Shown one piece after another: positions 67-64,000 of a stretch of 64,000 nt of DNA (position 1 is its first letter; every line of letters starts with the position of its first letter). A program made the translations under genes and the position numbers. The stretch is from the IMG/VR virus record IMGVR_UViG_3300031576_000001, positions 186,001-250,000 of that record; one strand, written 5' to 3'. The notes beneath the pieces were generated by a model. The model had not been told where the DNA came from, searched no databases, and worked only from the letters and a program-made list of their open reading frames with translations.

Positions 67-663
67 ATGAGATACCGAGTCCTCCTTGCTGTTACCCTCT
101 TCGCCCCCACCGTGCTCGCCCAAGACCCTGTGCAAACCGAGAACCCCGCGGCTTGTACGTCGGACAGTGTTTGCATACCCAGGGAGGATCTAGCTGTTTT
201 CGTTCAACTTTTGAAAGAGCGGCAGTGCTTGGTACGCACCAAGCCTGAGATTACCCTCTCGCCCATCCCGCTGGTCATTGACCGACAGGGTAGAGTCTAC
301 GGAGAGACAAAGACCACCCTACTCATACAATGGTGTAACTTTGAGATTACAGGGGGTGGGCCCGTCAAGATTGACGTGGCGGTACAGGATGAGCCCGTGC
401 CCCCACCACCCAAGCCGTCCCTCTGGCAGCCCGCGCTAAGGCTAGGCGTGGGCTACACAGTGCAAGCCTCTTGGGATGCTTTCTTGCTAGTCTCCCCTCT
501 GGCGTACCGGGGCGTGAGTCTCAACGGTCACGCTGGGGTGCGCTCCATAGGTGGCGGTTTGGGCTACGGTGTAACCTCTTACGGAGGCTTTTACGCTGGG
601 TACAGCTACAGCTACGAGGGTAAGCACGGGGCTACGCTGGGCGTATACGGCCGGCTCTGGTTA
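67..663 (+). CDS. Secreted / outer-membrane protein with C-terminal beta-strands
   Basis: N-terminal signal peptide MRYRVLLAVTLFAPTVLAQ, Pro-rich linker, Gly/Tyr-rich amphipathic strands. Ends GATLGVYGRLW (beta-signal-like) at in-frame TTA 661-663; the standard-code end is 717. Confidence 0.6.
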
Positions 664-674
664 GTCCACCCCGC

Positions 675-1298
675 TAAGAGGGTGCTACCGACTAGAAAAG
701 CGTCTTCACCAAGGTAGCGCTCGTACAAGGCGCTTAGCTCGTCGCAGGTTTGCTGGACTTGACTCTGGTAACTCTCGTCGATGCGACAACCCCAGAGGTA
801 CAGCGACTTGTAGAGACCGTCCCTTGTCACGTTGTGGAGTGTGTTAGCCAGCGCTCCGTGCCCCAAGGAGTTACCAACCCCACCAAAACCGCGGGTAACC
901 CCCCTACCCAGCGTCAACTCGCAACGGTACACGGCACCCTCTTTGGTGACCGTCACTTTGGAACCCAGCCTGTCCCTATCGCCCTTAGCCCAGAGGGTAG
1001 CCAGACTTATCGCCAGGTGCTCCATCCCAGGCACGTTTCTCTTTTTGTCCAAGAGAACCCGTCGCAGTCTGTTCCATTGGCTTTCACTGATACGGTCGGA
1101 CCAGAAGTTGTCTGCATAAAACCTGTCCCCCAGGTGCTCAAGGAACGCCTCTCGGTAGGACGCCCCGTTGGTTTTCCGCACCGGACCCTCTGCAAACCGA
1201 GCCGTGAGCGAGAAAAGCCCGTTTCGTTCCTGGCAGGTTAGCTGCCAGTCCCTCTTGACGTTGTTTATCACGATGGCTGTGCTCAAGTAATCCAGCAT
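675..1298 (-). CDS. Hypothetical protein
   Basis: ORF 612..1316. ATG at 1298; the first in-frame TTA (675-677) removes the overlap with the convergent gene. Confidence 0.6.
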
Positions 1299-1339
1299 GG
1301 CGTGTGGGGTCTCCAAAAGGGGTTCTGCACGGCTTTGCC

Positions 1340-1657
1340 ATGGTGGTACACCTTTTCCCGGCAGCTAGGGCTGTGCAACGCCGTATCGTAGCAAGATGGG
1401 TAGACAAGGGCACGCGAAAGCTGTCACGAGAGGTATACCGTCGCATCGGGGAAGACCCGCAAAGCGCTCAGTACCTCTCCGGGCTTCTACGGCGTCAAGC
1501 TGGTGACGTAGTGTCACTCCCCCCCTACGACCCCGCCCCGTTCAAGGAGATCGTAGACACTTGCCTCATGGTGACTGACCGTGACCCGGCGCGACTAAGA
1601 GACCTTGGATCAGCCTTGGACAGCCTGGCGCAAGCTGGGGCTAAAGCTACCGGGTGA
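1340..1657 (+). CDS. Hypothetical protein with RIVARW leader-like motif
   Basis: ORF fills the gap between two minus-strand genes; N-terminal QRRIVARW resembles the RVAxRY motif. Confidence 0.5.
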   Translation: MVVHLFPAARAVQRRIVARWVDKGTRKLSREVYRRIGEDPQSAQYLSGLLRRQAGDVVSLPPYDPAPFKEIVDTCLMVTDRDPARLRDLGSALDSLAQAGAKATG

Positions 1658-1702
1658 CAGCGGTGACGGGTGACAGCACGGTTTGCGGTATCTGCCGCGA
1701 GC

Positions 1703-2911
1703 TAAGCTCCAGATGTAGCTGAGGAGCCGGAAGAACATGCGCGAGACAAAGCCCTCTTCCTCGACGGGGCTTGGCGTCACGGGCGAGGGGGCGTCGTACA
1801 CGACCGGGGGTTCCTCTTCGGGTTCAGTCTGGACGCTGGGTTCCGTGGTCGTCACGCTCGGGGCAACCAAGGTGACGTGGCTCACGTAGAGTTTGCCGTC
1901 CCTACGGACCTCTTTGTTGGACACGGCGGCACCGAGGCGGGTACCGATGATGTGCGGGTGCGTACCGAAATGTGACGCCATACCCTCGACCGTGCTACCC
2001 TTCTCGCCCAGCGTGGAGAGGTAGGCAACGAGGTCATTCTTGGTGGGCGTGGGGAGTACGACGCCCGGGAGGTGACAGACGCCCGACGTGACCACGATGG
2101 TGCCCTTTTCGGTCAACGATTGTACCGCCGAGAGGTAATCGTTGCCGCACACGCCGAGGACAGCGACCGAGGAAGGCTGCTTGGTGATGAGGTTAAGCAC
2201 GTTGCACTCCGTCTTGGTCATGACCGGCTCACCCTTCGGGTCCCTCGTCGGGCTGGCGACGGTGAGGGACCACAGTTTGCCCTCGACGGTGACCTGACCT
2301 TCACGCTGCATGGCTCGCAGTTCCGTGAGGACGACGGCGCGGGCGCGGTGGACGCACTTGTTGATCTGGATCACGGAGAGGGCGTATGGCTGCGCCATGG
2401 TCAGCGCTTCCGTGATCTTGGTACGGAGCCACGCTGGTTTGGTGGCCGCCTTGGGCGCAGAAGTCTTTGGGCTCACGGAAGGCGCCGGCTTCTTGGGTGC
2501 TTCGGGCTTCCAGCCGATCCGACCGTTCCGCACGAGGAGACCCTTCAAGACCAGCAGCGTGGTGGCGACATACCGCTGGCTCTGGGTCGCCAGGGGTGCC
2601 TTGTTGAGGACGCGCACCTTGCCACCCACCCAAGCCAGCACGGTCAGCTCGTTGGGGGTGAGGTAGGGGGCGGGTACCCGGTCACCCTTGCTGCGGTAGT
2701 ACTCGGCAAGTTGGTCCAGGGTACACTCTCCCTTCTCCCGCCTGCGGTGCGACACCCCGTCATAGGTGCAGGGGATGCCCTCCTTGTGGAGGTTGTAGAC
2801 GAGGGTGAGCAGCGGGGCGCTGTCCGCGATCAAGGTTACCGGCCTCTCCTGGGGGGGCGCCTCGGTCCCTGGGGTGATGTCGTGGATGATGTGTGTGCGG
2901 GGGTTGTCCAT
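1703..2911 (-). CDS. Hypothetical protein, probable tandem winged-helix DNA-binding domains
   Basis: Repeated wHTH-like units (e.g. LSVIQINKCVHRARAVVLTELRAMQREGQVTVEGKLW). ATG 2911 lies 11 nt from GGTGTA; ends at TTA 1703-1705 (standard end 1610). Confidence 0.55.
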
Positions 2912-7822: not shown

Positions 7823-9273
7823 AACGTCTTCTTCGTGGTGTGATCCGTTGGACGGCTGAAGAGACCTCCGCCGTAGTGACCCGGAACTACCGGGCGCTCA
7901 TGGAGTCGCGTATCAAGTGGGAGAGGCATGACGACGCGGCGCTCCTGGCCTATGTGACGCAGTATTACCGCTCACACCTTGAGGTTCCGGGGCTGCAATC
8001 GGTCACGGACTACTTTACCGCGTCCAACGACGTGGAAGTCATCGAGCGCCTCAAAGACCTTGGGTCCGCAGAGGTTTACCAGGGGAGCGCCTTTGATGAA
8101 TTGATTGCCCGTGTGCAAGAGGCTCAGATCAAGCAAGCCTCTCTGGCGCTGGTGGACACCACGCGAGCCATCATCACCAAGGGGGTCAAGATTGACAAGG
8201 AGGAGCTTCTTGGACCCACGGACGGTATCCGTTACTTTACCAGGGAGGCGCCTAACGTCATCATTGCCAGTCACGGTGCCAAGGTCAGGGGCAGCGTCAA
8301 GCAAGACGCACAAGAGGAGATCGACCGGTACTACCGTGCCAAGTATGACCCTAATGGCGCGTATGGCGCTCTCACCGGGCTTGTTGAAATGGACAAGATC
8401 ATCCACGGGGGCAAGAAGGGTGAGCTTTGGATACACGCGGCTTTTGTGGGGGGGCTCAAGTCTACTTTCGCTCGTAACTGGTGCTACCACCTGGCTACGC
8501 GGGCTGGTGCGAACAGCCTGTACTACTCGCTGGAAATGCCCTTTGAGCAGGTACAGACCCTCTTTTGTGTACTTCACACAACGCACGTCAAGTGGACCTC
8601 TCAGGGGCGCACCCCGCTTGCCTACGATAGCGTGAAGTACGGGTTGCTGACCCCAGAGGAGGAAGCCTTTTACGAAGAGGTTTGCCTTGACTGGAAAAAC
8701 AACCCGGAATACGGCGACGTTTTCATAGAGAGCCCAGATGAGATCGACGTTACCATAGAGGAGGTCAAGGCTACCGCGGAAGTCAGGCACCACGAGAACA
8801 AGCTAGCCATGTTGGTTCTTGACCACGGGGGGCTTATCAAGCCAAGGGTGCGCAACAAGGACTACGTGATCGAGTTCAACAGCGTGGTCAGGGACGCCAA
8901 GAAGCTAGCCCTCTCGTTCAACAAGGGCGAAAAGATATTCGTGCTTCTCCTGGCGCAGATAAACCGGGACGGTTACGACACGGCGGTAAAGAACGCCGGG
9001 CGCTATCAGCTACGGGCGCTAGGCTACGCCAACGAGCTAGAGCGCAGCGCCGACGAGGTAACCACCTCCTTCCTGGACGATGAGCACCGGAAGAACGGTA
9101 CGGCTTTCTTTGATCACTTGAAGCGCCGGGACGGTCAACTTTACCAACCGTTTACCGCACGGATCGACTTTGCCTCTCAGCGGCTCTACAACATGGAGCG
9201 CTTCGGTGGCGAGGATGGTCCCTCTTACGACGATAACCGTAGCGTGCTGGACCTCGTACTGGGGGGCGTGTTA
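7819..9273 (+). CDS. dnaB: Replicative DNA helicase, DnaB family
   Basis: GELWIHAAFVGGLKST (Walker A variant), YSLEM, LVLDH, LLAQINR, ELERSAD. First in-frame TTA at 9271-9273 (standard end 9378). Confidence 0.85.
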
Positions 9274-9323: not shown

Positions 9324-9869
9324 ATGCCCATGCCCCCCTGGATTACAGCCCGCGTTGAACGTGCCAGAGAGGTCGTAACCGCCTTTGACCTCCTCTCCCG
9401 GTACGGTGTCACACTGCCTAGAGGGTATGATTCCACCCAGCAGATACCGTGTCCGTTTCACGGGGACAAGAGGCCATCCTGTAGGGTGTATGACAGCACG
9501 GCGGGGCAACCGTCGCATGTTTGGTGCTACGTGTGCAATGAGCGCTGGGATGTTATCCGCCTGTTCAGCAAGTTTGAGAACATAGAGAGCGACAAGTTTA
9601 CCCGGGTGCTCACCCTCTTGGAGAAGGCATTTGACTTGCCCCCCTTGCCGGAGGGCGCAGGGGTCAAGCCCGAGAAGGAGCTAACCCCTTACGAGAAGCT
9701 ACTGCCCAAGGTGGAGCTAAGGCTGTCTTTCTTCCGGGGGGAGGTAGACGCTGCCCAGTTTATGGGGCTTGTTGACGCCTTGGACGAGGCAATCCACGTC
9801 GGGGAGACCGCGGGTCACCAAGAGGGGGAGGTACAGCTACAGCACGTCCTAGACCTCTTGAGGGTCTTA
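9324..9869 (+). CDS. CHC2 zinc-finger protein (primase Zn-binding domain only)
   Basis: CPFHGDKRPS...WCYVC, no TOPRIM domain. Ends at TTA 9867-9869, 2 nt before the next GTG. Confidence 0.75.
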
Positions 9870-18354: not shown

Positions 18355-18912
18355 ATGGCCATGTGGGACTGTTCAATACCCAAGCCTACAAACCAGACGT
18401 TCTCTGACGCACACTCTTGCTTCTCCGTTCAAGAGCTTATCGACCTGAACCAGGACAACCCTGTCGAGGAACGCCCCATAACGGACTTCAACGGGGAGCT
18501 AGAGTGTAGCCCCTGGGGCAGCCTGTCTACCCTCCGCAAGTTCTTGCACCACGCCAACCGGGTCAACTGCGCGGACACGAGCCACCCCATCCTTGTCAAC
18601 CAAGAGGGCCTAGTGCTGGACGGGTTGCACCGACTGGCTTACGCCTTCTTGAAGGGGTACCAGACCGTGAGGGTCCGTGTGGTCACAAAGTACCCACCAA
18701 ATCTCTGGGAAGAGAAAGACCTGGCAAGGCTGGCAGCTTTTGGGCTGATTACCCTGTCTCAGATAGAGGCACGCATAGTGCCGCCCGTTCCGGTGACACA
18801 ACAGGGTAATCTTTGCCCCACCCTGTCTACGGTGTGCGCCTCTTTGCTCTGTGCGGTTACCAACCCCTCCGTTAAGAGGGACGCGCCCCAGGACGAGCCA
18901 GAGCCAGCGTTA
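18355..18912 (+). CDS. ParB/Srx-like domain protein
   Basis: HPILV...VLDGLHRL motif. In-frame TTA at 18910-18912 (standard end 18981 runs over the next promoter). Confidence 0.6.
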
Positions 18913-18985: not shown

Positions 18986-20089
18986 ATGACCTACCCGAAC
19001 CTGGACGATAGATTTCAGCCGATCTACACCAAGCCCCTCACGGGGATTCCCACGGCAAAGCGTGCGCGAGCGGACGCTTCTAGCGCGGGGCTAGCGGGTC
19101 CAGCGCTAGACAGGGTGGTGAGGTTGGAGGGTGCAGAGAGGCACTGGGCGAGAACGACCGCTACCCTGGAAATGGCATTGTGGGCTGCTTTCTCGGTACG
19201 CCACCGGGACTGGCAAGAGGACACGGAGCACCGCAAGGGGTTTGCACGAGACGCGGCGAGCCTGGTCAGCGGGGGAGCCTCTGAGTTGCACTTCCTCACG
19301 GACGTGCTGGCGCTAGCCTGGGCGCACCTCACGTTGGACATCAACTACCACGGCGGCGGGAACGAGGACCAACCCGCCGTGCGCCTGCCCCCGTTCCGCT
19401 CTCTTGGGCTGGGCAAGTGGAACAAGATCGACACGGAGAGCTACGCCAGTGCCGGCAAGTCAGCCCTGGTCATCCTGGGCGAAGAGCTTGACGCTGAAGC
19501 CGAGAGGTACGCCCAAGAGGCGAGCGGGGCGACCGTTACTCAGTTTCAAGCCAGGGACGGTGAGTTGTACGTAGAGGTACGGGTAGGCTCCGTGCTTGCC
19601 GTGTCCACGCACGTTCCCCTGGCGTGGTACAGGGGGAGCGACCTCTGGGGGATTGACCCCTGGGTTGACCGTCTTTGCCTCGCCAAGCTGTCAGCCTGTC
19701 TCAAGTCTGGTTTCAAAGAGGGGATGTTGCCCTGGGCTACGTTGTACAACCGGCTGCAAGCCAGGCGCCGTGTCTTCCGGGCTGCACATTTCTGGTATGA
19801 CTTGCTGCAAAAGTTCCCCGAGTACATGGAGCCCGCCCGTACTGCTGAGCCTGGTTCGCCCCTTCACGCGGTGTGGCAGCTAGCGTGTTTGCCTTACGAG
19901 AGTGACCTCCTGGCGGCGGACCTGTGGCTCAAGAGTGTAGCCGAGGAGGGCGCTTCCATGTCACAAGCGCTAGCCTGGCTAGAGTCCCTCCACCACCTAG
20001 AGGGGGCTCTTGTCCCCCCGGACAGGGTAACCGACCATGACCTCAGTTTCCTCTCCAGCGCGTCTCCCTGCGAGGGTAGCCCAGCGTTA
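18986..20089 (+). CDS. Hypothetical protein
   Basis: GGTGTA-N10-ATG; first in-frame TTA at 20087-20089 (standard end 20146). Confidence 0.6.
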
Positions 20090-20798
20090 CGCTGCAAAGA
20101 CGAAAGCCAAAGCGCCGCCGTCAGCCCCGGAGCCCACGGGGATTGAGAAGGCAATCAAGGACGCCTTTGCTTCTCTGGGGGGCGAGTTGGGCTCTACGCT
20201 GGCTAGTGAGTTCGTCTCTGTTCTTGACAGCAAGCTAGAGAGCGCCCGTGAGCGTGTGCTCAACTTGTCTGCGAAGTCCTGGGCGGTGGCACGCAAGGGG
20301 ACAGAGACCTCCTCTTGGGAATCTGACGAGACAGGATACCACTACTCGGTCGAGCTAGACTACCCAGAGGTTGTAACGGCTACCGTGAAGGCGCCGTTGT
20401 CGTGGGACACACTAGTCACTGAGGTTGCCCAAGGGGTAGACACAAAGCACCGTGGTCTCGCCGTAGAAGTTATGCGTACCCCGGCAGTAAAAGCAGCTTG
20501 CCTCAAGGTGGCGGAAGAGCGGGTGGCGCTACAGACCATTGAAGCAGGAGAGCTACGGACCTCACCTCTGGGTGCGTCCGCGGTAGAGTTCGCTGAGGAC
20601 AAGTCACAAAGGTCCATCGACTCCGACGACGACCCCAACTACGAGATACCCTGGGGTAAGCACGAGATTACGGTACACGGGGGCAGCGTGACCGCAAAGC
20701 TAACCTCCTCTGGCGCGCTGGACGTACTCTTTACCGCGAGCGTCGGGCTAGAGGTTGAGTTTTTCTGGCCCGGTGACCGTGGGTACAACGATTGGTTA
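20037..20798 (+). CDS. RVAxRY-leader protein (putative virion internal protein)
   Basis: N-terminal LPARVAQRYAAK; ends at TTA 20796-20798. Confidence 0.6.
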
Positions 20799-25188: not shown

Positions 25189-26355
25189 ATGACCGTCAAG
25201 CAAGCCGCCTCTATGGGTGACCCCGCGGTACTTCTATCGCAACTTTCCAGTCTTAGCTTCGACCTGGACCGCAACGTGGCGGATCTCAAGGAGTACCACG
25301 CCAAGCTAGAGCGCCGCGACCCAGACCGTTACCGTAACAGTTCTATCGTAGATGCTGCTTGGAAGCAATTCGGAGACATTCTCGGGTCACGTAAGGTGCG
25401 CGACCTTGGTTTTGCGCTCCTACAGGATTACGATATGACGGTAGCCCACCGAAAGGCTGTCGAGGTGGGGGTACACTTGCTCAGTCACGGCGCCCGTCCC
25501 AAGGCGCCAAGGACGGGTGACCGCGCGTTGGCAATGGCTAGCTTCGTCTTGGACCGGTGCATCACGGTGCAGAACCTTCTCAGCTCCGCAAAGGTGGTCA
25601 TTGAGTCAGGCAAGAAGCACAGCACAGAGGGTGTGGGTGCTACAGCCAACGCAACGAAGTTTCCCGCAGGCAGCTTCACAGTAGTCAACTCTGGCGGGTT
25701 CCCTGAGAAGACCATCAGAACGGTCGTGGACCTTGTAAAGAAGGCGGACCAGGCTCTAAAGCGCAGTGGATTCCCGCAGGTTTGCTATGGCCCCGTGTTC
25801 ATCACGAAGACAGTGGGTCGCTCGTCCAGTGTGCTGGCGTTCTACGATCTGAAGACGGATGATATGTACGTCCGCGCTAACCTGAAAGGCTCGGGCAACA
25901 GCATCCTCCTGAACTTCTTGCATGAGGTAGGGCACCGCTTTGACTTCAAGTTTCTAAAGGATAACCAGGGTAAGCAACGCCTCTACAATGAGGTTTCCAG
26001 GCAAGAGGGTCAACGTGAATTTATCGCACCCATCGTGGGTACACAGTTCAAAGACCACAAAGGTCTGAACTGGGAGGTTCTACGTGTAAGCGGCTCTTCC
26101 CTCTATGTGCAAGACGCAGAGGGGCGCACGGGGACAATGAGTGTGCGTGGGTACTATGAGCAGACCGGCAAACTAAGGGACACGGCTAACCCTAAGCACC
26201 TTGGGTTTGTGTCTGCTTATGCCAAGACTGACCCCGATGAGAACTTCGCTGAAATGTTCTCTCTGTACTGTGATGATACGCTCCCCGTCATGCAAAGCCT
26301 CTCCTTTGAGGAAGTGTGCTTTGGTAAGCAGGACACGTCACGCAAGACCGCGTTA
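25189..26355 (+). CDS. Zincin-like metallopeptidase (HExxH)
   Basis: FLHEVGH; VSAYAKTDPDENFAEMF. TTA at 26353-26355 (standard end 26367). Confidence 0.75.
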
Positions 26356-26364
26356 GCTCAGAGC

Positions 26365-26841
26365 TAAGGCGCCCATTAGCTCGCCCCAGTCCGAGGCTAG
26401 TAGGAAGTCGGCACAGAGGTGTACACCCTCAGTCAGCCTCGGGAGCTTGCGGTAGGCACACCCAAGAGGCGCTGTCCCTGCAAGGCAGGGGGGCTCAGGC
26501 GTGTCCTCCTCGCGCAGCCGCGGACCTTCGTAGCACTGGCTACCCAGGCGAGACCCGTAGGTGTACGCCTCGCTGTAGTACGGGCAGTGGTTAGCGGAGA
26601 CCTCTTCGGGGGTAAACTCGACCGTGATCCGCCAGTGTCCCCTTATAGGCTTCTGACCTGACCAGTTCTTGGGGAGGGGCAACAGGGTGCTCAGGTAGGC
26701 TCGCCCCTGTGCCTGACTGCAACGGTAGTTAGGGCAGTCAAGGTAAGCGTCCGGGTGGCGGTCAAAGAAGCTTGTGTCGCCGTCGCCTGTAAAGTAGCGG
26801 TCAACGAGCACGGTCTCTTTACGGAGGGGGGGTGACGGCAT
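26365..26841 (-). CDS. Cys-rich hypothetical protein
   Basis: GGTGTA-N12-ATG; TTA at 26365-26367 (standard end 26353). Confidence 0.5.
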
Positions 26842-28352: not shown

Positions 28353-28703
28353 ATGGACGTTTGCAGCGTTGTCCCTGCCAACCTGAGTGAAGCCCTCGTC
28401 TACATAGACGACACCTGGCCCGACATGCGCGAAGAGCTAATCGAGCATGGTCCTGTGGCGTATCACAGCACCATGGGGATGCACCTTCGGAACATCTTTG
28501 GGCTGTGGTACAAGAGCCCCCTCGCTCAACACCTAGAGAAGCACTGGGGCGTTTCCCACCCAGACGACATGAGCGGGCTTCTCTTGGAGCAATGGGTCAC
28601 CTGGCTCAAGAAAGCCAAGCCCGCCCTCCCATGGGAGCCTGGTTACGTACCGCCCTGGGTCGAGCCTCCCACCTGTTTGACTCTGGCGACCGAGATTGCT
28701 TTA
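28353..28703 (+). CDS. DUF6794-like protein
   Basis: H...GMHLRNIFGLW...HPDDMS signature. TTA at 28701-28703, two codons before TAG. Confidence 0.6.
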
Positions 28704-38664: not shown

Positions 38665-39551
38665 TGCAACCACAAGCCAAGGTCATCCTCGATAGCGTCA
38701 CTCCGGGGGGTTATCGCCTCACCACGTTGGAGGTCACCTACCACCGATTCGTGCTCGCAGAATTGAATACCCACAGAACCCTGTCGCGTAACTCGGGTAG
38801 CTCGCGGGCTATCCCTCTCAGTAAGACGCTGGACTTTGTGCGTAACAACACGGCGTTGCCGGTTCACTGGGGTAAGAACCAGAAGGGGATGGTAGCCGAA
38901 GAGGAGATTAGCCCAGAGGATCAACGCCAGGCGGCTACCGTGTGGATGCGAACCATGAGCGCGGCGGCTAGTGGGTCAGAACAGCTAGCGGCTCTTGGGG
39001 TACACAAGCAGCTAACTAACCGACTCATCGAGCCCTACTCCTGGCAACGCAGCATTTTCACGGCGACCGAGTGGGATAACTTCCTGGGGCTACGGGTGGA
39101 CAAGGACGCTCAGCCCGAGTTTTACGCTCTGGCGCTAGCTATACAGCAAGCCCTGGTTACCAGCACCCCTACGCTTCTCTCAGAAGGTCAGTGGCACCTT
39201 CCCTACGTGGACGGAGCTACCCGCGCCGCCTTCTCTGAGGCGGACTGCATCAAGGTCAGCGCCGGACGGTGCGCCAAGGTCTCGTACCTCACCCACGAGA
39301 CCAGTGCCGACCCTTGCGATGACATCGACCGGTGCAACCGTATTCTTGAGGCTGGACACTTCTCGCCCGCCGAGCACCAAGCCATGAGCTTGACCAAAGA
39401 GGGTTGGGTAGAGTACGCCACCGAAGCGTTCTGCCGGTTTCTCTCTGACCGTATACCGCTGGGTAACCTGCAAGGGTGGGTTCAGTACCGCAAGCTACTC
39501 ACGGACGAGCACGACTTCTCACGGGTCAAAGCCAAGAGGCGGGTTGGCTTA
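38664..39551 (+). CDS. thyX: FAD-dependent thymidylate synthase
   Basis: RFVLAELNTHRTLSRNSGSSRAIP, HKQLTNR, AQPEF, HFSPAEH. Ends at TTA 39549-39551. Confidence 0.85.
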
Positions 39552-42681: not shown

Positions 42682-42866
42682 CAGCCCTCAGCACAAAACT
42701 GCTCACCTTGGAAGAGGCGATTGAGCACTGCCAGGAGAACGCTGTCGGAGACACCCCCTGTGCCAGGAACCACCGCCAGCTAGCCGAATGGCTTCTTGAG
42801 CTACAAGCTAGGCGCTACAACAAGGCCCCCACCGTCGCGTGGGGTCAGGGTCAGGGTCAGGTATTA
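42678..42866 (+). CDS. Hypothetical protein
   Basis: TLEEAIEHC...HRQLAEWL. TTA 42864-42866 is shared with the TAA of the convergent gene. Confidence 0.55.
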
Positions 42867-43355: not shown

Positions 43356-43763
43356 TAACGTCCAGTAGGGGGGTTTAGCGTTACCCTTACGTGTGCCCGT
43401 GATCTCGACGAATTTCACGGTTTTCTCGACGCGGGCGCCGTTCTTCCGAGAGAACTGAACCACCACCCCCGTGCCGGTGACACGCTGCACCGTGCCGTTG
43501 TACGTGCCGCACCCCCCGGGGCAGGGGTAAGCCCACGACACCACCGCACCGGGGTAGAGGTAGACGCCGCGGGACCAGCAAAACTCGACCCACTGGTCCA
43601 GGGCGTCCTTGTGTGAGCCGTGGGCGGGCATCACGGGGACCGCAAACAAGCCTTCCTTGTCGCGGCTGTCCACGCAGAGACCTTCCACCACGGAGAGGGT
43701 GAATTCCTTATGGGTGCCGCGGTTACCGACGATGACGAGGTTTTTGAGGTTGAGGGGGCGCAT
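43356..43763 (-). CDS. Hypothetical protein
   Basis: Starts at a CGTA-class promoter; ends at in-frame TTA 43356-43358. Confidence 0.6.
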
Positions 43764-44739: not shown

Positions 44740-46524
44740 ATGACGCTATGTGACCGGGTAGCCGCGAAGTACAAAGAGAAGAAGAAGGTCAAGACCCAGA
44801 AGGGCGAGTCTACGGTCTACCTCTACTCGGAACGCCAGGTCAAGAACCGCAACAAGGAAAAGGCCAAGAGGCTAGAGTCTCTTCGCAAGAACATTGGTGA
44901 CCTTATGGGTCGCGTCAAGCGTGACCTAAAGTCTGAGGACGTGGACACCAAGCTAACCGCGCTCGCCGTTGCGCTTGTTGACTCTACGTATGAACGAATT
45001 GGAAATGAGGAATCTGCGGACGAGCGTGGGCACTACGGGGTTACCGGGTGGCTCAAAAGTCACGTCAAGTTCAGCAAGAGCAAGGCGGTTATCAAGTACA
45101 CGGGCAAGGCTGGCGTCGAGCACACCAAGGAAGTAAAAGACAAAGCCATTCTCTCCGCGCTACGTGACGCTTGCGAGGCGGTTGAGAAAGACGACCCGAT
45201 CTTTGAGTACGACGGGGGCACCGTGACCCCTGAGAAGGTCAATGCTTACCTGAAACCGTCCAAGATAACAGCCAAGGACTTGAGGGGCTATCATGCTAAC
45301 GATACGATCAAGGCCATTCTGAGGACTCTACGCGGTAAGGGCGGCAAGCTCCCCAAAGACAAGGAGGAGCGCAAAGCTAAGCTCAAAGAGGAATGGAAAC
45401 AAGCCCTCGCAGAGACGGCTGAGATTATTGGGCATGAGTCCATTACATTGAAAAAAAGCTACCTTGTGCCCGGGCTTGAGGCAGACTTCATGAAAAACGG
45501 CACGGTAAACGATAAGATGGCTTCCCTACAAAGCTCCCGGTACTCTTCTATTGCTCAGCGAGTAAGCCAGCGATGGGCGCACCTTCACGATTGCGTGATC
45601 CACGCGGGCTGCCCTGTGTGTGGCTTCACGGTGGACGAGGCTACCGGAGAGGTATACGACCCTGGCTACCCCTGTCCTGTGTGTGGCGTGGGTGGCGCCG
45701 TTGTGCTTTCCGCTGAGGACTCCCTGGGTCGACAGAAGATAGCCTCTGAGGCGGACTCTGAGGTTACGCTAGCGGCTCGCGTGATGGTAGCGGCTTATCA
45801 AGGCTCCCCGGGGATAGACAAGACTGCCAACATGGCGGGTCGTGTCAAAGACCTACTTGCCCTTTGGAAGCGGGCACCCTCCGTGTGGGAGAAGATCAAA
45901 GAGGCTATTGGTTTGCCCGACGACTTCGACAGCCTCTCGATGCTGGGCAAGGCGCACGCCCTCATGGGAGCCTTCAAGGAGTTTGCGGCGCAGGGGAAGA
46001 AGGCAGTCGCCCACATTTTCCACCAGCTACCGACGACCTTCCCTCTCAGCATGTTCTTCGTGCCGCGTAAGAAGGTGCCAGGCATCACGGACCTTTTGGC
46101 AAGACTGGTTGACGAGGTACCCTGGCTCAAGTCCGCGCTAGGCAAGGCGAGCGCTCACCTGGGGAAGCTGGACGACTTGCTCGACAAGTACGTGCCCATA
46201 ACCAGCAAGGTCATCAAGGCTGCCGCCTTTATCTGGGTCTGGTTTGCGGCAGCCGAGCTATCGTGGGACATACCGTTTCTGGTCAGGGGTTTTACGGGGC
46301 TCATCGGGCTAGGGGAGCTTTTCGGCTCCATGCCAGAGAGCGCCCTGGGTCTGATAGCCAGCATGTTTGGGCTAGGGTACGGCGCCCTCCCGGTTACCTT
46401 GGTTATCCGGCTTGTCTGGCTTGTCGCAGAGGATTACCTCTCTTGGGTACCCGGCAAGGGGCTCAAGGTTCACTGGGACAAGCTAGGCATACAACGCCAC
46501 GATGAGCTAGTGGTGACTGCGTTA
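44740..46524 (+). CDS. DNA topoisomerase IB fused to a Zn ribbon and a hydrophobic C-terminal domain
   Basis: RIGNE, YTGKAGVEH, TAKDLRGYHAN, IGH...KKSYL give the R-K-R-H-Y pentad; CPVC twice; TM-like tail. Ends at TTA 46522-46524. Confidence 0.8.
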
Positions 46525-46832: not shown

Positions 46833-47354
46833 TAACCGGGCGCTCTCAAACTGGTTCAGCTTTTGGGTGACCTCCTCTTCGGTGAGGGGGAGGGTGACGT
46901 TGAACGTGTCCGTCTTGGCGCTGTACTTGACGGCGAGCCCGTACTGGCGGCACTTCCTGGCTAGACCGAGCGCCTGGCTCGTCTTGCTGGTAGCCTGTCG
47001 GAGGTTCGCCTTGTGGGTAGCGACCCCCTCCTTGTAGGAGGTGGTGAGGTCGCGGGCTACGGTGTGGGCGTTGAGGGGAGAGAGCCCCATTCCGTAGTAC
47101 CGGCTCTCAGGTTTGGTGCCTGGGTAGATGACTTGCGCCAAGAGGTTGTCCTTGGTGGGCTTGGCGGTCCACGACACCACGAGTGAGGGCAACAAGGACG
47201 CCGGAGTGTGCCTGTTGCCCGTGGGGGTCAAGGTGACCTTCTTAACCCCGTCAAAGACCGTGATGGAGGAGAGGGTGAAGTTGAGCCCTTCGAGAAGAAG
47301 CTCGGCTTGCACTGAGGCGAGAAACCACCGTACAGGGAGGGGGTAGCGTGCCAT
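46833..47354 (-). CDS. Hypothetical protein
   Basis: GGTGTA upstream; TTA at 46833-46835 (standard end 46764 runs over the next promoter). Confidence 0.55.
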
Positions 47355-47393
47355 GTTCCTTTGACCGGTACACCGTTCCCCGCCTCTTGGCGT

Positions 47394-47663
47394 ATGGGTA
47401 TGACGGATTACATCCAGCCTGGGGAAACCGTTCTCTACGGAAAATTCAAGAACCGCCCCGCTCTGGTGGTGCGCTTCTTCCGAGATGACCGTGGGGTACC
47501 CATGGTCGAGCTAGAGCCCGTCCCCAAGGGTCGCAAGTCAAACCGGATTATGTCCCTCTTTACCGTGTGGAAGCTACCCGCCAACCGTGCTGAGGCTACC
47601 GCGACCAAGATTGCAGGGCGCTATGTGGGTAGGTATGAGGTATCACCCGATAGCGACGACTTA
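47394..47663 (+). CDS. Small SH3-like hypothetical protein with KIAGRY motif
   Basis: GETVLYGKFKN; TTA at 47661-47663. Confidence 0.5.
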
Positions 47664-52382: not shown

Positions 52383-54665
52383 TAAGATGGCGATCTTGAC
52401 CTCGGAGAGGGCGAACGTGGCTTGTACGTCCCCCAGCTTGGCGGTCTTCAACGTCAGCTTGCAGTTGTCCAGGGAGGTAAACTCCGAGAACCATACCTGC
52501 CCAAGCACGGTGGCGAGCTTGATCTGTGCGATTTCCCTGAGAAGCTCCCTCGTCTCACGGGTCGCCTCCTCGGCGCGGGCGCGTAGCCAGGTCAACCCTT
52601 CCTCGGGGTACTGGAGGGCAACGTCCTTGATGGCAGGCTCCATCAGCAAGGCGCCAGCGTTACCCTTACCCTTGGCCAGCTTCTCCACAGCCTCTTTGAG
52701 GGAGGGCAACGCTGAGAGCCCCTTGAGACTCACGGTAAGCTCGCTTCCGATGTAATGGTCCGTGGACTCCTTGGTCAGCGCCTTGGGTGCGAACCCGCCG
52801 TAATCCGTGATCCCTTGCTCTTTCAACCAAGATGAAACCTCTTCGCCGTGGATAGCGCTGTACCCCAGGCTGGTCTTGCCCCCACCGTAGTCCTTGAGGT
52901 ACCCCTGGTAGACCTTCTGCCGGGCGCGAGCCTCGGTAAGCTGCATGACCTTCTCGCCCAACGTCTTGGCTGAGAGGGTCTTGGTCATGGAGCGGTTGAC
53001 CACGGCAAGGGAACCCAGGTCAAGAACCGCCTCGACCTCAAAGTCCAGCTTGGTCTCGGAGAGAACCGGTACCCCTTTGGCTTTCAGGTTGGCTAGCGTC
53101 TCGTGCGAGACCTTGACCGGCAAGCTCTTGACATTGACCAGACCGTCACGGATGATGCTGTAGTTCCGGTGAATGTAAGTAGGGAACTTCTCGGGGAGGT
53201 TGCCCACCATGGACGGGGGGAGCCGCTTGGAAAGGTCCACGGTCCCCCACACCTTGACCTGTAGGCTCACGTTCGGGCGATCCTCGTTGTAAACGAGGTT
53301 TTCGATGGTCGAGCCCGCTTCCTTCTCAGCCTCATCGGGCACGAACGTGAGAGGCTCTGGCTTGCTGGCGACAATGCTTGCAATCTTCTCTTGCAAGGTT
53401 TTGACAGCGGCTACCGTGATCTTGGGCTTGCTCATCTGAGCTTGCAACGAGGCGATCTCAGCCGTCTCCTCGTCCGTGAACCGCGAAGAGGCATCCTCCC
53501 GTGCGCGCCCGATCCGGGTGTACTTCCACTCGGGGTGGTACGGCAGAACCCGGTTGGTGCTGTCCGAGGCGAGGATACTGAGCACGTCCAGCACGGTCAC
53601 GGCGTTGTCGTCGGGTACCTTGGTGGGGTCGTAACCCTCTTGGTAGCGAGCGCCCGCGTCAAAGGCTGCCTTGGTCACGTCCGCCTGAAACTCGCTGTAC
53701 TTCTGCTTTCCGAAGCACTTGGCAAACCGGGTAATGAAGCGCACGTCACCCGTGAACTTCAACAAGGGGAGCACCACGTCGGGCTGCATCCGGCTTGAGA
53801 ACAGGCTAATCGCCGCGTACACGGGGGGCAGTACCGCCTCGTCAGGCTTCCCCGTGGTCGGCGCACCCCCCTTGCTCGCAGAGAGGTAGTACACGGTGGT
53901 CACGTCGGGGGGTACCGTGACGGAGCCCCCCTCTACGCCAAACGTCAGCACGTCACCCTGAGAGAGGGCAAAGGCCACGTTACCTACCGCGTCCCCGGAG
54001 AGGGTCAGCGTCTTCTTGGGGGTCGCCGCGACCTTGCGCCCGAAAACCTTGGTGATTTGTGGCTCGTAAGCCGAGAAGTCCTCCGTGAAGAGGAGGGCAC
54101 CCCCCAGCTTGGCTGCCATCGCAGAGAGGAGGGAGCGGTCAGCGTAAAACCCCCACTCGACCACGGCGGCACTATCCGCCTCAATCTTGCCCAGGGTAGC
54201 CAGGATCTTCTCTCGGCTCCCCTGGTTGTCGTAACCGTCGCTGAGGAACAGGAGGGCTACTGCCTCCCCGGGGTGCGCCTTCCTTAGCCTGGCGATCACG
54301 CGCGCCGCTTCCTCCAAGGGGTCTTGGAAGCCTGTGAGCCCTACCGGCTTGAGCCAGCGGTCCACCGCAGCGTTGACCTTGGCCAGGTCTTTGAGGTTAC
54401 GTAGCGCCACGTCCTCGAAGATGACCCCACACTCCCCCCTGCCGGAGAACCAGATCAGGCTCACGGTGTCCTTCTCGCCCACCAGCGAGGGAAACTTGCC
54501 CTTGATCTGCGCTCGCATGTCGGGCAGCGCACCGCTCATTGAGCCGCTGCAATCGACAACCAGCAAGTGATTCGTCGGGGGCGCTTTCGCTGGGGTGCTG
54601 TCTTTGCCCGCGCTAAAGGCTACCAGCGCGAGTCCGTTACCAAGAGGCGTTGTTGTCGGTTTCAT
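52383..54665 (-). CDS. vWA-domain protein
   Basis: MIDAS VVDCSGSM, GLT, FLSDGYDN. The only in-frame TTA follows EVKIAI (standard end 52194). Confidence 0.85.
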
Positions 54666-56116: not shown

Positions 56117-57709
56117 TAACCGAGAGGAGGCTAGGTGAACGATGTCCCACGCGGGCTCGCCTGTGTAGACCTCAGCCTCTAGGGGTGTGAAGTGCCCCAG
56201 TAGGAGCCTTGCCTTCTTGCTGGCAGAAACCTCCAAAGACTCGATGGCTGCCATGAGGTTCAGCAAGACCTCTGACGACTCGTTCTTGAGGGGACCGTCA
56301 ACAAGGTGGTTCAGCAAGTCCAGCGCCTTGGGGTTGAGGGAATAATGCGACCGCCCCCCTTTGAGCGCCGTGAGGTTGATCTTTACCCCGAGAGGCTTGC
56401 TGGTGATGGGGGTCAGTCGCCAGTCGTCGCGCAGGGCGACAACGGATTCTGGTTTGAGGGCTACCGCCTTACCGTTGAAAAACATGGTTGCCGTGTACTG
56501 TGTGGGTCTCACGCCCTGAGCCACGTCAAACATGATTTCCACCTGGATCTTGCGACCCGCACCTTCAGCCTCAGCAAGGAAGCCCGCGCCAGCCAGGGCG
56601 TCTTTCAAAGAGAGGGTCTCTTTCTCGGTCCTCACGTCCTTTGCGGTGAGCGTAGTCTTGGTGGGGCTAAGGACGGCAAACTTCTTAGGTACCTCGAAGT
56701 CCCCAGGTAGACTCTTGGCGAGCGCCAGCATGACTTTCGGAATCGCTGAGAGGTTCTTGGCTACCCCGGAGACTGCGAGAAAGGACTCCTCGGCTACGGT
56801 CTTTAGCCCCGTGGCGCTAACACTGGGGGTTTCATTGTATCGCACCCCACAGAGCACGCCGTACTGTTCGCCCTTCTTACCCACCGCTACGAAGATTTGC
56901 GCGGTTTGGTCCACGGTTGAGCCCTCCCTTCTCAGCGTTTTCCAGCCGTGGTCGGCTACCACGCCCCATTCCACCCCGGAGGGGGGGTTGTAGAAGGGCA
57001 CCCCTGGAATGGTGGTGGGTGGCTTCTTACTGTTGCGATAGTGGTTGACGGGTACCGCAAAGAGAGCCACTGTATCCTGCAACGCGTCAACCACACCCTC
57101 TTTGGTTGTAAAAGTGCGGACTACCTGTGGGACTGACGACAATTTACCTGAGCCTTGGAGGGAGTAAGCCCATTTGGACAGATCCCCTCTTGGCTGAAAC
57201 ACTTTGAGGAATAGATTCCCGTCGTAGGTATTACCAGCGATGCGACAGGCTACACCTTCGTTGATCAGTTCGATCTTGAAAAGCGACCACGGCACAAGGT
57301 CTGGCATTTGTGCCGTAAGATAGCGTAGCCAGTGGGGGGAAGCCTCTTGGCATACCCTTAGAAGATCCGTAGCTGGGGGCGGTTGCTGGGGTCGCGGTGC
57401 GGGGCGCGTGTACGGTGACTGTGGACGGGGAGCGTAACCACCCCCACCCCCGCTGTACTCGGGCGTAGCGCGCTGTACCCCCGTTAGTACGTCCTTGGCC
57501 ACGTTGACCTGGACCATCTTGCTTGGGTCACCACCCCGGTCAGGGTGGTTCTCAATCGCCTTGCGCTTGTACGCCTTCTTGATGTCCTCTTCGGTGGGTG
57601 TACCCGTCAAACCTAGCAAAGCCAGCGCTTCGCTACGCTTCATGGCTTGGACCAGGCGAGCATAGAGGGTTCTCTTGTAACGGCGAACAAGTTCGTTTGG
57701 GTCAAGCAT
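56117..57709 (-). CDS. J-domain (DnaJ N-terminal) protein, long
   Basis: IKKAYKRKAIENHPDRGG...VNVAKDVL. TTA three codons before the TAA at 56108. Confidence 0.8.
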
Positions 57710-58150: not shown

Positions 58151-58531
58151 ATGCACCATCGGGTTGTCGCACAGTACGTTCGCAAGCTCTACGCCCGCCT
58201 CGTCCTGGCAATGACCACCCAGGAAGCCAAGAGGCTCTTGGGGTTGACCTCAGCCTACCCGACCCAAGAGGAGGTAAGCAAAGCCTGGAAACAGAAGGCG
58301 CGTGAGAACCACCCCGACCTGGGGGGTAGTGACGCGGTGATGGCTCAGATCAACGCAGCCAAGGACGTACTTCTCGGGCTAAACCAGCGATTCACCCCGG
58401 ACCCTACGTGGTCTACTGGGGGTCCGCAACAGGCTCAAGCCACGCCAGCGCAGGGGTGGTCATGCAGAACCGCCCTCCAGCACGACCCACAGGGGATAGC
58501 CAGAGAGAACAGTTTCAATACCTCCGGGTTA
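58151..58531 (+). CDS. J-domain protein, short
   Basis: VSKAWKQKARENHPDLGG...INAAKDVL. TTA at 58529-58531; 3' end uncertain. Confidence 0.7.
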
Positions 58532-60114: not shown

Positions 60115-60564
60115 TAAGCCCTTGACAATCAAGGTAAAAGAGCCAAGCGGAGAGGTAACCTGCATGGTGCGCTCTCCTGGGGGGGTGTAGACATCGAGGG
60201 GGTAAGCACCCTTGGGTAGGAGGTTACCCAGGTGGTAGTGAAGCTCACCCCACACCCAAGAGGCAAGGCTAATCTCGGGGGGCTTCTCGGTCTTGGTACT
60301 GTCCTCTTCCCAGACTTGCACCGTGGGCTCAGGGTTGAAGGTGGGTGGGGGGTTTATGGTGACCTGGAACCGGTAGAGGTGGGAGCCCTCTGGGTAGCCC
60401 TGTGGGCTAAGGGGGAGGTCACGCTCCAAGTAGAGGTTCTTCTCCGTGGTTGCCCAGTTGTAGGCGAGCCAGGCGGTCATCACGCGGGGAGTGTACTTCT
60501 CTGGGTCTTCTCCGGGTTGGGCGACTCTCATGCGGTGTGGGTGCTGTGTGCTCGTATCGGTCAA
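60115..60564 (-). CDS. Hypothetical protein
   Basis: TTA at 60115-60117, five codons before the TGA at 60100. Confidence 0.5.
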
Positions 60565-61310: not shown

Positions 61311-61721
61311 ATGTCAGACGACGCTGTACTGTACGGGCTTCTTGGGTTGTGCGCTGTGCTGGTGGTTCTTGAAGCCTGGCGTAACCACCAGATACTCAAG
61401 AACATTGCCAAGCTCAACGACGACTTGAGCGCCAGGCTCAACGCTATAGGGACGCACAAGCCACCGGAGAGGGTTGTTGAGCCGGCGCCCTCGACGACAA
61501 CCGAGGCTAAAGGTGTTGAGCGCCCGTCGTGGGAGTTTCCGTTGTCCCCCTCACAGTACACCCACGTCAGCGTCAAGGGTAACCCGGCTGACGTGCAGAA
61601 GGTTCTCGACGAAGTGGTGGCGCTAACACAGGCCGTTCAAAAGGTGGGCTCTGTGTCCCACCAAGGGTCAGCCGGCGAGGCGTCCTCTACCAAAGAGGGC
61701 TCTACTAGCCGCAATGAGTTA
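61311..61721 (+). CDS. Membrane-anchored protein
   Basis: GGTGTA-N11-ATG; N-terminal TM helix; TTA three codons before TGA. Confidence 0.55.
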
Positions 61722-62035: not shown

Positions 62036-62077
62036 GGTGAGCCTATCCTACCCTAAGAGGAAAGGAGCGTCTACAGC

Positions 62078-63154
62078 ATGGCTACCCTCGCAGAAGTCAA
62101 AAAAGGCACCTATAAAAGCTATTGTGGTCCCGTTTTCTGGGGTTCGGTCAAGGTTTCCGACCCAGGGGTCACTGAGGGCGGCAAGTTCTTGGTTGTCACT
62201 TCCACAACCGAAGGGGGGCGCTGGGACTCGGGGCAAGCCTACGATTCTTGCCGTTTTACCGCGGGCGGTATTCAATACTGCGAGCGCTTCTTCCTGGTCT
62301 CAGGCTTGCTAAACGCCATCGGTAACCGTAGCCAGGCACTTCTCACCCCGTTGCAAGACACCCTGGCTAACTTTGGGGCTGAGTTCAAGAAGGGTAGGTT
62401 TCACCTGAACGGCAAAGAGGTAAAGACCGACAAGGACCAGTGTAACCTGTTCTTCAAGGGGGGCACAGGGCTACAAGGCTCTTGGACGGACGACGCTTGG
62501 CAACAAGGATCTGAAATCGTGGTCGCCGTGGCTAACGTGCTGGCACAGCCCGAAGCGATTGACGTTCAGAAGGCGTACACACTCCCCAGGCTCAAGGGTT
62601 TTGCGATCAAAGAGGCTGCCAAGGTGCTCTTTGGGGGTGGCGAGCCTAGCGTAGGTTGGGTAGGGGCTATCAGGGCAGCCTACATTAGCTTTGCAGCCAA
62701 CAACCCCACGCTCGCCTACAACGCATTTACCAGGGTTTTTCAGGAGTCAGGCGAAGAGGTATTCAGCGAGGCGTGGTGCGTGAGGCTGCTAGAGGCGCTT
62801 ACCTTTAGCTCCGGGGTGGTCATCTACCCCGAGCGGTACAACAAGATACGCCCCGTCATTGAGCGCCTCTTCGGGGTGGACCTCCCCGACCACGCAAGCC
62901 AGTTGAAGACCTGGGAAGAGGGGATGGGCTCTACGCGCACCCTGACGACGCCCGTCGAACTACAAGAAGCCCTTATCACTCTAGGTTACGACCTTGGACC
63001 CGCAGGCGCTGACGGTAAGGTGGGCAAGAAGACCACGGAAGCAGTCAAGGCGTTTCAGAGTCAGCGTGGCTTGGTGTCGGACGGTCTTGTGGGACCGCAG
63101 ACACGGACAGCTCTGCTACAGGCTCTTGAGGCTGTGCAACCCCCGTCGCAGTGA
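62078..63154 (+). CDS. Endolysin-like protein with C-terminal peptidoglycan-binding domain
   Basis: LQEALITLGY...DGKVGKKTTEAVKAFQ...DGLVGPQT; N-terminal TEGG.WD...AYD...AGGIQ is lysozyme-like. Confidence 0.75.
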   Translation: MATLAEVKKGTYKSYCGPVFWGSVKVSDPGVTEGGKFLVVTSTTEGGRWDSGQAYDSCRFTAGGIQYCERFFLVSGLLNAIGNRSQALLTPLQDTLANFGAEFKKGRFHLNGKEVKTDKDQCNLFFKGGTGLQGSWTDDAWQQGSEIVVAVANVLAQPEAIDVQKAYTLPRLKGFAIKEAAKVLFGGGEPSVGWVGAIRAAYISFAANNPTLAYNAFTRVFQESGEEVFSEAWCVRLLEALTFSSGVVIYPERYNKIRPVIERLFGVDLPDHASQLKTWEEGMGSTRTLTTPVELQEALITLGYDLGPAGADGKVGKKTTEAVKAFQSQRGLVSDGLVGPQTRTALLQALEAVQPPSQ

Positions 63155-63566
63155 GGGTGACCTCTGGCAAGGGCGCAGGCTCAGGGGGCGCTTGTACCGC
63201 GGGGGCAGGCGTAGGGGGCAACGCTACCGGCGCGGGCTCTGGGGTGTTAGCCGCTTGCAGCACCTTACGAAGAGCCTCTTTGGAGGCTTTCTTGGTAGGC
63301 GTAGCTTTGACCGGAGCGGGCGGCGGGGTCTCCGCTACGGGCGTGGTCGCTGGCCCAGACTCTTCAGGGGGAGCGTGGTCCAAGACGCCCAGCGCCAGGT
63401 TACAAAGGTCGTACAGGTCAGCCGCCTTGTTACCCGCGTAACGCATAGCGTTAGGGAGCGTGACTAGGAGGCGGGCTCGGTAGTGTTGACTATGTGCCAC
63501 GTCCGCCCCGATGAGCTTTGCGGAGAGGCAGCGGTCGCGAAGGTCGAGAATCTCTTGTCTCTTCAT
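63045..63566 (-). CDS. Pro/Ala-rich hypothetical protein
   Basis: ATG (MKRQEIL); 3' end overlaps the endolysin. Confidence 0.45.
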   Translation of the reverse strand: MKRQEILDLRDRCLSAKLIGADVAHSQHYRARLLVTLPNAMRYAGNKAADLYDLCNLALGVLDHAPPEESGPATTPVAETPPPAPVKATPTKKASKEALRKVLQAANTPEPAPVALPPTPAPAVQAPPEPAPLPEVTLTATGVAQPQEPVAELSVSAVPQDRPTPSHADSETP

Positions 63567-63636
63567 GGTGCGGGGTAACTTAGCACACCACAAGGGCTCC
63601 GCACGCTTTGGCGCTAGAAGGGCGTACCGAGAGGGT

Positions 63637-63867
63637 TAAGGGGTACTGGCTACGCTTCAGGTACCAGACCCACCTTGCGTCAAAGGGGCCAGACTGAGGG
63701 GGTACGACCACGGCGGGCTTTGCGGGTGGCTTGTTGCAAGCGCAGTCATTGTTCTGGTGGAGCCCAAAGAGCTTGACCTTGACGATGCCCACCGTGTACA
63801 GCGGTACCGTGAGGGCGAGCACACGCCCGACGTGCAAAGCTCCCATCACGTTTTGCGCGAGACCCAT
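63637..63867 (-). CDS. Small hypothetical protein
   Basis: ATG 3 nt after the upstream in-frame TTA (63871-63873); ends at TTA 63637-63639. Confidence 0.45.
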
Positions 63868-64000
63868 GGCTAAGCCATTAGCCTCTTTGCGGAGACTCCG
63901 CTCACTGGCGCCAAGGTAGGCGATCTGAGAGTGGTCCACCGTGCCAGCCTTGCCTGCCTCAAGGCTCGTTGCCCGAGGGACTACCCTCATGCTCACGTCC

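Follow-up and report, generated by a model that had tools for sequence, protein, structure and literature searches.

TTA as a probable fourth stop codon of a cave-metagenome jumbo phage

Introduction

During infection by the jumbo phage described here, the leucine codon UUA very probably acts as a fourth translation stop and not as a leucine codon, a conclusion that we draw from sequence. The case arose in a 64-kb stretch of DNA, positions 186001-250000 of the virus record IMGVR_UViG_3300031576_000001 (58.9% G+C; hereafter the window), for which an original prediction held that TTA behaves as a stop beside TAA, TAG and TGA. The position of TTA within genes, the ends of homologous proteins, the coding signal on either side of TTA, and the message of the phage transfer-messenger RNA (tmRNA) agree with that claim, and the tRNA genes found in the part of the genome covered are compatible with it.

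To our knowledge, the natural code changes described in phages and free-living bacteria convert a stop into a sense codon or swap amino acids, and changes from sense to stop have been recorded in mitochondria alone. The literature yielded no account of TTA as a stop in phages or bacteria, a negative of limited reach.

The record is a contig of 322,633 bp assembled from a cave metagenome, also available as JGI Ga0247727_10000022 and as ERZ27247320 k141_3047311. An ENA assembly of the same genome (322,662 bp) is rotated and crosses both ends of the JGI contig, so the genome is circular or circularly permuted. It is the genome of a jumbo phage, with 59% G+C.

Materials and methods

Starting from the window, the contig was walked in both directions and merged, which gave positions 1-42030 and 173988-322633, i.e., 190.7 kb or 59% of the genome. 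Beyond the window, results refer either to a merged part of 141 kb (43,115 codons) or to the full 190.7 kb (56,302 codons). Open reading frames (ORFs) were listed from stop to stop with all in-frame TTA marked, and a codon-usage gene caller was run with three and with four stops. The homologue ends of DnaB and other genes were placed by semi-global alignment. Where loci are cited by number, L017, L019, L020, L025, L030 and L031 are the phage's own loci outside the window, and L002, L006, L007 and L010 are loci of its relatives.

Results

Read with the standard code, the 190.7 kb contain 233 genes, in which there are 82 in-frame TTA, and 65 of these lie at most 65 codons from the standard stop. 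The window follows the same pattern (83 genes, 20,331 codons, 32 in-frame TTA), with 21 of its TTA at most 35 codons from the standard stop and the others mostly upstream of better start codons or at the junctions 20796, 39549 and 43356(-). After trimming both ends of the 20 longest window ORFs, TTA was counted 4 times in 9,770 codons, next to 165 CTA, 167 TTG, 142 CTT, 62 ATA and 137 AAA, and the four should include the proposed junctions 20796 and 39549. The claim that the large genes lack internal TTA was borne out for the SNF2 helicase with its inteins, PolA, AAA, the intein-bearing methylase and others.

Tabulated by relative gene position, in-frame TTA clusters at ORF ends both inside and beyond the window. 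In the 141 kb, 39 of 66 fall in the final tenth of their ORF (binomial p = 1.5e-22); the nine control codons ATA, AGA, CTA, TCA, AAA, TAT, AAT, ATT and TTG are evenly distributed along ORFs. Position-specific base frequencies predict approximately 215 TTA codons for the same 43,115 codons. TTA could still be a very rare leucine codon of the standard code, with the tails behind it translated, as the phage has 59% G+C, its GC-rich relatives are also poor in TTA, and one TTA is aligned with a hydrophobic residue (see below). However, the 43,115 codons are rich in other triplets that end in A (CTA 649, GTA 678, ATA 229, AAA 480), while the GC-rich relatives are poor in every A-ending codon, and the relatives spread their rare TTA along genes, unlike the clustering at ORF ends seen here. 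As homologues moreover stop exactly at TTA, the positional and homology tests already contradict this explanation, which we consider very improbable. The loci of seven related phages (G+C 50-65%) carry TTA scattered through their genes, including inside the vWA homologue, which makes the trait specific to this phage lineage or its host.

Off-frame TTA is at a normal level in the window, where it makes up 0.7% of off-frame triplets (359 and 365 per strand). An artefact, whether TAA miscalled as TTA in sequencing or assembly or UUA edited to UAA in the RNA, is suggested by the single base between the two triplets and by the presence of the genome in one sample only. Such an error cannot strip TTA from the frame of approximately 56,000 codons yet leave the off-frame level normal, and the JGI, ENA and Logan assemblies are concordant wherever they overlap in the merge, so that an artefact seems scarcely credible. 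Logan, the product of a second assembler, is identical to window 42601-48500 (5.9 kb with five TTA sites), with zero differences at a depth of approximately 12. A search for RNA or independent DNA runs with the genome matched only the source cave sample, a DNA run. A nuclease that cleaves mRNA at UUA was also considered and is excluded, because the avoidance of TTA is specific to frame and off-frame TTA is normal.

The four-stop reading of the 190.7 kb yields 247 genes, which end in TGA (111), TTA (67), TAA (36) and TAG (33). TTA is therefore the first in-frame terminator in approximately 27% of genes and the second commonest stop, above TAA and TAG, and the three standard stops end genes as well, as had been claimed. 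Gene overlap in the window drops from 1,461 nt with three stops to 969 nt with four, in keeping with the predicted reduction. One TAG-terminated gene ends where its L006 homologue ends. Reading TAG or TGA as sense, as in the phage codes 15 and 4, found no support in the 190.7 kb, the regions after both being non-coding-like. All 25 TTA sites named in the original prediction are in frame, and 24 are gene ends in the independent four-stop calling; the gene at 33940(-) was not called. The sites are listed below, where a tail is the stretch between TTA and the next standard stop and scores are codon scores per codon.

661..663, + strand: end of gene 67-663; 17-codon tail, non-coding-like; last residue of the L002 homologue at 198, TTA codon 199.
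675..677, - strand: end of gene 675-1298(-); 20-codon tail at -0.17, upstream +0.28.
1703..1705, - strand: end of gene 1703-2911(-); 30-codon tail at -0.24, upstream +0.18.
9271..9273, + strand: end of the DnaB-like helicase gene; L002 DnaB ends at residue 484, TTA codon 485.
9867..9869, + strand: end of gene 9324-9869; 8-codon tail; L002 homologue ends within 4 residues, ambiguous.
18910..18912, + strand: end of gene 18361-18912; in frame, 22-codon tail; homology uninformative.
20087..20089, + strand: end of gene 18986-20089; in frame, 18-codon tail.
20796..20798, + strand: separator of two genes in the standard ORF 20037-21998, placed by homologue starts and ends.
26353..26355, + strand: four codons before the TAA of gene 25189-26367; uninformative alone.
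26365..26367, - strand: four codons before the TAA of gene 26353-26841(-), the mirror image of 26353; uninformative alone.
28701..28703, + strand: two codons before the TAG of gene 28353-28709; in frame, 1-codon tail; uninformative alone.
33940..33942, - strand: TTA in the frame of ORF 33802-34230(-); on the + strand its letters are the TAA with which the methylase stops; gene not called.
39549..39551, + strand: separator of ThyX (38664-39551) and a CxxCxxCC-domain gene, placed by Pfam domains and stand-alone homologues.
42864..42866, + strand: end of gene 42678-42866; in frame, 24-codon tail; overlap with the convergent gene's TAA.
43356..43358, - strand: separator of two genes in the standard ORF 42864-43763(-), called with four stops as 135 aa and 149 aa.
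46522..46524, + strand: end of the topoisomerase IB-like gene 44740-46524 (Pfam Topoisom_I); 9-codon tail at -0.36.
46833..46835, - strand: end of gene 46833-47354(-); 22-codon tail at -0.01, upstream +0.40.
47661..47663, + strand: end of gene 47394-47663; in frame, 8-codon tail.
52383..52385, - strand: end of the vWA-like gene (52383-54539 or longer), where homologues end.
56117..56119, - strand: three codons ahead of the DnaJ-domain gene's TAA; in frame, 2-codon tail; uninformative alone.
58529..58531, + strand: end of gene 58151-58531; 42-codon tail; the gene itself scores weakly.
60115..60117, - strand: end of gene 60115-60531(-); in frame, 4-codon tail.
61719..61721, + strand: three codons before the TGA of gene 61311-61730; TTAA context, 2-codon tail; equally compatible with a sense codon.
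63637..63639, - strand: end of the small gene 63637-63867(-); in frame, 18-codon tail; weak gene call.
63871..63873, - strand: end of a gene reaching beyond the window (contig 249871-250479); the standard 299-aa ORF becomes genes of 202 aa and 76 aa.

The 106-nt convergent overlap of the genes ending at 661 and 675(-) vanishes once TTA is read as a stop. The gene after DnaB starts at ATG 9324, preceded by an AAGAGGA motif. Neither Pfam nor PHROG gave a match for the two genes in ORF 42864-43763(-) or a family for the gene ending at 63871(-), and a homologue search with gene 1610-2911(-) returned the query alone. The convergent genes at 26353-26367 meet in the near-palindrome TTAGCTCAGAGCTAA, in which the in-frame TTA of each gene is the reverse complement of the in-frame TAA of the other, and a similar TTA(N11)TAA layout is found at 661-677.

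The coding signal is lost after TTA, as expected from the remark that reading TTA as stop removes implausible tails. G+C at the three codon positions is.63/.47/.74 just before TTA and.62/.62/.66 between TTA and the next standard stop, so codon periodicity disappears, and the codon score per codon falls from +0.22 before TTA to -0.07 in the tails. The 15 codons after TTA score -0.06, which is indistinguishable from those after TGA, TAA or TAG. The median distance from TTA to the next stop is 17.5 codons, as for the other stops, where a random sense codon would give approximately 140. A +1 shift into TAG or TAA at these sites was excluded, since 22 of 50 have C or T after TTA, including the vWA site.

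Homology was found to stop at TTA in every testable case. The clearest is the vWA-like protein, for which all ten aligned homologues, drawn from 589 matches, end in ...E[IV]xIKI; the window protein reads ...SEVKIAI and the next codon is TTA, so that the last homologue residue lies at 718 and the TTA is codon 719, and the 62-aa tail behind it has no counterpart in any homologue. A VLD motif common to both proteins is followed after 5 aa by the end of L002 DnaB (45% identity) and after 6 aa by the window TTA, and for the gene at contig 264818-265291(-) the homologue ends at 142 and the TTA is at 143. Together with gene 67-663, this gives four cases in which homologues end exactly before TTA. Family profiles place other ends close by: a Pfam Gp80 domain ends at aa 128 with TTA at 132, the phrog_13336 profile ends near aa 338 with TTA at 335, and PHROG profiles of an AAA protein end at approximately 390-410 (TTA at 430, standard stop at 540).

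Two apparent fusions point the same way. In ORF 20037-21998, residue 1 of approximately 100 homologues is aligned to ATG 20844 (query residue 270), and for the first half, residues 52-249 of the 250-aa protein P0258 match query residues 56-253; a 45-nt spacer with GGGAG lies between TTA 20796 and that ATG. In ORF 38664-40136, Pfam Thy1 covers aa 21-169 and CxxCxxCC aa 327-412, the TTA is codon 296, and the CxxCxxCC homologues are stand-alone proteins in the relatives L006 and L007. GTG directly follows TTA 39549, with AAGAGG 12 nt upstream. Judged from these alignments and signals, each ORF is two genes with TTA between them.

The phage carries an array of about 40 tRNA genes at contig ~21.2-31.3 kb (L030 775-10822, reversed), of which ARAGORN found 38; Rfam adds a tRNA that ARAGORN missed, with the anticodon loop CUUGUAA, i.e., Thr(UGU). 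A TROVE/Ro60-like gene and a ClpP gene flank the array. No tRNA-Leu(UAA), whose loss had been proposed as something to look for in phage and host, was found among the approximately 41 phage tRNAs in the 59% of the genome covered. The leucine anticodons are CAA, CAG, UAG and GAG only, in paralogous tRNAs with a short variable arm. Thirteen of the 14 A-ending sense codons have a cognate U34 or I34 tRNA, including the heavily used AUA, CUA and GUA, and the sole gap is UUA. The Gln, Glu, Lys and Arg(AGR) boxes have both C34 and U34 species; Leu(UUR) has the UUG-specific C34 species alone. The codons CTA and GTA are above expectation, which is unusual for 59% G+C, and matching phage tRNAs are present (UAG, UAC, UAU). 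A further tRNA, with a good cloverleaf and the amber suppressor anticodon CUA, lies at L020 13027-13101 (-), contig ~307.8 kb, yet TAG behaves as an ordinary stop in the 190 kb read.

Inside the array lies a tmRNA of 378 nt (L030 1398-1775(-)), which matches RF00023 with 52.8 bits (threshold 47; E 7.5e-20) and has the G3:U70 pair and a CCA end. From the resume codon, which is placed with high posterior probability, the tag frame reads ANDNVEAAPLALAA, a canonical tag that closes with ...ALAA and is directly followed by the codon TTA. The tag frames of tmRNAs lie between pseudoknots 1 and 2, and this TTA stands just before pseudoknot 2; the next standard stop comes 31 codons later, in the region aligned to pseudoknot 3. 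Since a rescue RNA must itself terminate efficiently, the tmRNA favours true release at UUA over a stall. ARAGORN misses this tmRNA even after an in-silico change of TTA to TAA, and the test does not inform on the stop. When genomes were scanned by pattern for further tmRNAs in which TTA comes after ...ALAA, no candidate host emerged; 185,579 species genomes gave 2 matches, neither of them a tmRNA.

Some observations weigh against UUA as a dedicated stop. The pattern scan also gave six metagenome matches besides the source, among which the sole real tmRNA (L038) reads ...ALAALVA, its TTA encoding leucine inside the tag; ALAA thus need not be terminal, and the tmRNA argument is strong without being proof. 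At several of the listed sites the tail is no longer than 1-4 codons, and these are uninformative taken singly. Searches of the 190.7 kb by tblastn with E. coli RF1, Pth and PrmC found no release factor, Pth or PrmC; RF2 and ArfB were not tried separately.

That no release factor and no tRNA-Leu(UAA) were found in 59% of the genome, and that the phage has its own tmRNA and ClpP, would also fit an unassigned, hungry UUA codon at which ribosomes stall and are freed by tmRNA after A-site cleavage, by an ArfB/ICT1-like hydrolase or by drop-off. In E. coli, tmRNA tagging sets in where the tRNA for a rare codon is scarce, and for mitochondrial AGA/AGG a role of ICT1 has in the past been suggested. 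However, with rescue by tmRNA a quarter of the phage's proteins would be marked for degradation, and a tmRNA message ending in UUA would bring the rescue system itself to a halt. Gene ends, too, should be free of a codon that is purely unassigned, whereas TTA is the second commonest terminator, which fits an efficient signal at mutational equilibrium and not a costly stall. We regard stalling as unlikely, though it deserves consideration, and the tmRNA evidence favours factor-mediated release over an undecoded codon.

The most direct point against UUA as a stop comes from one gene outside the window:

L020 10420-10809, contig 305196-305585: gp82-like gene (Pfam Phage_L5_gp82, PF25735; domain E 1e-22 in Pfam, 2e-19 in PHROG).

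Its codon 38 is TTA and is aligned to a conserved Val in three phage homologues. The gene is seemingly intact and embedded in an operon, with a GTGA start/stop overlap with its upstream neighbour, and it does not look recently imported, as it uses the phage-favoured GTA (4 GTA, 1 CTA). A homologue search with the gene returned the query alone. It was recognised beforehand that TTA within a conserved domain would speak against a stop; this occurs clearly once. The gene may have become a pseudogene recently or may rely on read-through, or else it may indicate that context matters for termination at UUA, its TTA being followed by A. Of the 82 in-frame TTA, this one alone is clearly internal to a conserved domain; it qualifies the claim (a leaky stop, a pseudogene or a recent mutation) and does not overturn it. 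The base after TTA stops is A in 2 of 50 cases and G in 26 of 50 (G follows approximately 25% of all TTAN). The genome as a whole is strongly depleted in the palindrome TTAA (94 copies, compared with 250-832 of the remaining TTAN), so the scarcity of A after TTA stops is not a termination signal.

The gp82-like gene, which needs TTA as a hydrophobic residue for a full domain, would also suit a conditional stop of the bldA type, where UUA stops translation without tRNA-Leu(UAA) and is read as leucine when host or phage supplies that tRNA, giving fused or extended proteins at certain stages or in certain hosts. ThyX and the CxxCxxCC protein lie in one frame with TTA as the sole separator, and phages are known to time gene expression by recoding. 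Yet the tails have neither coding periodicity nor homologues and their lengths are as random, so that most read-through products would be junk, and 1 of 233 genes seems to need read-through. A conditional stop is accordingly improbable in our view, though it stays in contention.

Besides the TTA sites, the window encodes the following genes:

2962-7050: SNF2 helicase with two inteins.
31387-33942: intein-bearing N6/N4 methylase.
Other genes: DnaB-like helicase, PolA, AAA proteins, ThyX, topoisomerase IB-like protein, vWA-like protein, DnaJ-domain protein and peptidoglycan-binding protein.

Outside the window, the phage encodes:

L031 17222-20104: intein-bearing class II ribonucleotide reductase.
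L017 8525-8743 (-): IF1-like protein (PF01176).
L019 5965-7029: RNA ligase (PF09414).
L031 12957-14555: GroEL-type chaperonin.

The inteins of the SNF2 helicase, the N6/N4 DNA methylase and the ribonucleotide reductase have LAGLIDADG or HINT domains. Neither a called gene nor a tRNA nor an Rfam match falls in the 1.7-kb stretch L025 6017-7707 (contig ~4.4-6.1 kb). No near-identical DNA was found in the phage database, and the nearest relatives are contigs of 100-530 kb with approximately 45-50% protein identity. One of them, a 377-kb contig with 50% G+C, carries a tRNA with the ochre suppressor anticodon UUA (L010 14763-14853) beside a PTH2 peptidyl-tRNA hydrolase gene; other members of the phage group appear to alter termination as well.

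Discussion

The closest known counterpart is genetic code table 23, in which TTA is a stop in the mitochondria of Thraustochytrium aureum. There too the same leucine codon has become a terminator beside three standard stops, and there too the change was recognised from gene ends and internal absence; applied to the phage, the same tests find TTA absent from conserved interiors, with one exception, and coinciding with homologue ends. However, one is a small genome of a eukaryotic organelle and the other a 322-kb phage genome with Shine-Dalgarno sites, bacterial tRNAs and a tmRNA, and common ancestry is implausible. With the vertebrate mitochondrial stops AGA/AGG, which are read by mtRF1, and the TCA stop of Scenedesmus mitochondria (table 22), a former sense codon no longer has its tRNA and terminates translation, as would hold for the phage, and the specialised release-factor paralogue for AGA/AGG is the kind of mechanism that we favour for the phage. 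These systems are organellar and involve other codons and few genes, whereas in the phage approximately 27% of several hundred genes would be concerned.

Stop recoding in phages, including huge phages, assigns TAG to Gln (code 15) or TGA to Trp (code 4). The present case resembles it as a phage-specific code in a large phage with many tRNAs, a CUA suppressor tRNA and translation genes, but runs in the opposite direction, from sense to stop, and TAG is still a stop here. In Micrococcus luteus no decoder of UUA is present, and in Streptomyces bldA is the tRNA-Leu(UAA) that reads regulatory UUA. With UUA rare or absent and its tRNA missing or limiting, such states are a plausible first step by codon capture. 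There, however, UUA is absent everywhere or is a true leucine codon in a few regulatory genes; in the phage it ends a quarter of the genes and the tmRNA tag frame. The pattern of bldA-type genes was not found in the phage, where TTA stands at ORF ends with one internal case within a domain and no tRNA-Leu(UAA) was found in the 59% of the genome covered; nor is TTA absent from gene ends, as an unassigned codon would be, since it ends 67 of 247 genes and the tmRNA tag frame.

As to mechanism, we lean towards codon-specific release at UUA having evolved in the phage or its host, with the phage co-adapting its tRNA set and tmRNA message. UUA would be decoded by no tRNA, as the near-complete phage set, so far as covered here, would read UUG through tRNA-Leu(CAA) and each A-ending sense codon other than UUA but lacks tRNA-Leu(UAA). 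The release itself would be the work of a release factor whose second-position specificity has changed and which could be encoded by the host or by the remaining 41% of the phage genome. It would be normal, efficient termination and not a stall, as a tag frame of ANDNVEAAPLALAA followed by UUA suggests.

If UUA is indeed a stop in this phage, it would be the first change from sense to stop in a phage or bacterial translation system and the first outside organelles. It would mean that bacterial-type termination can gain a new codon and would point to an undescribed release specificity or another releasing activity. Standard gene callers would assign wrong C-termini and false fusion proteins to approximately 27% of the phage genes, and screens for alternative codes that are limited to amino-acid meanings are blind to a change of this kind. 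The system lends itself to direct tests, with the codon, the genes concerned, the gap in the tRNA set and the tmRNA all defined. For the phage itself, a UUA stop would form a built-in barrier to the expression of its genes in cells that use the standard code.

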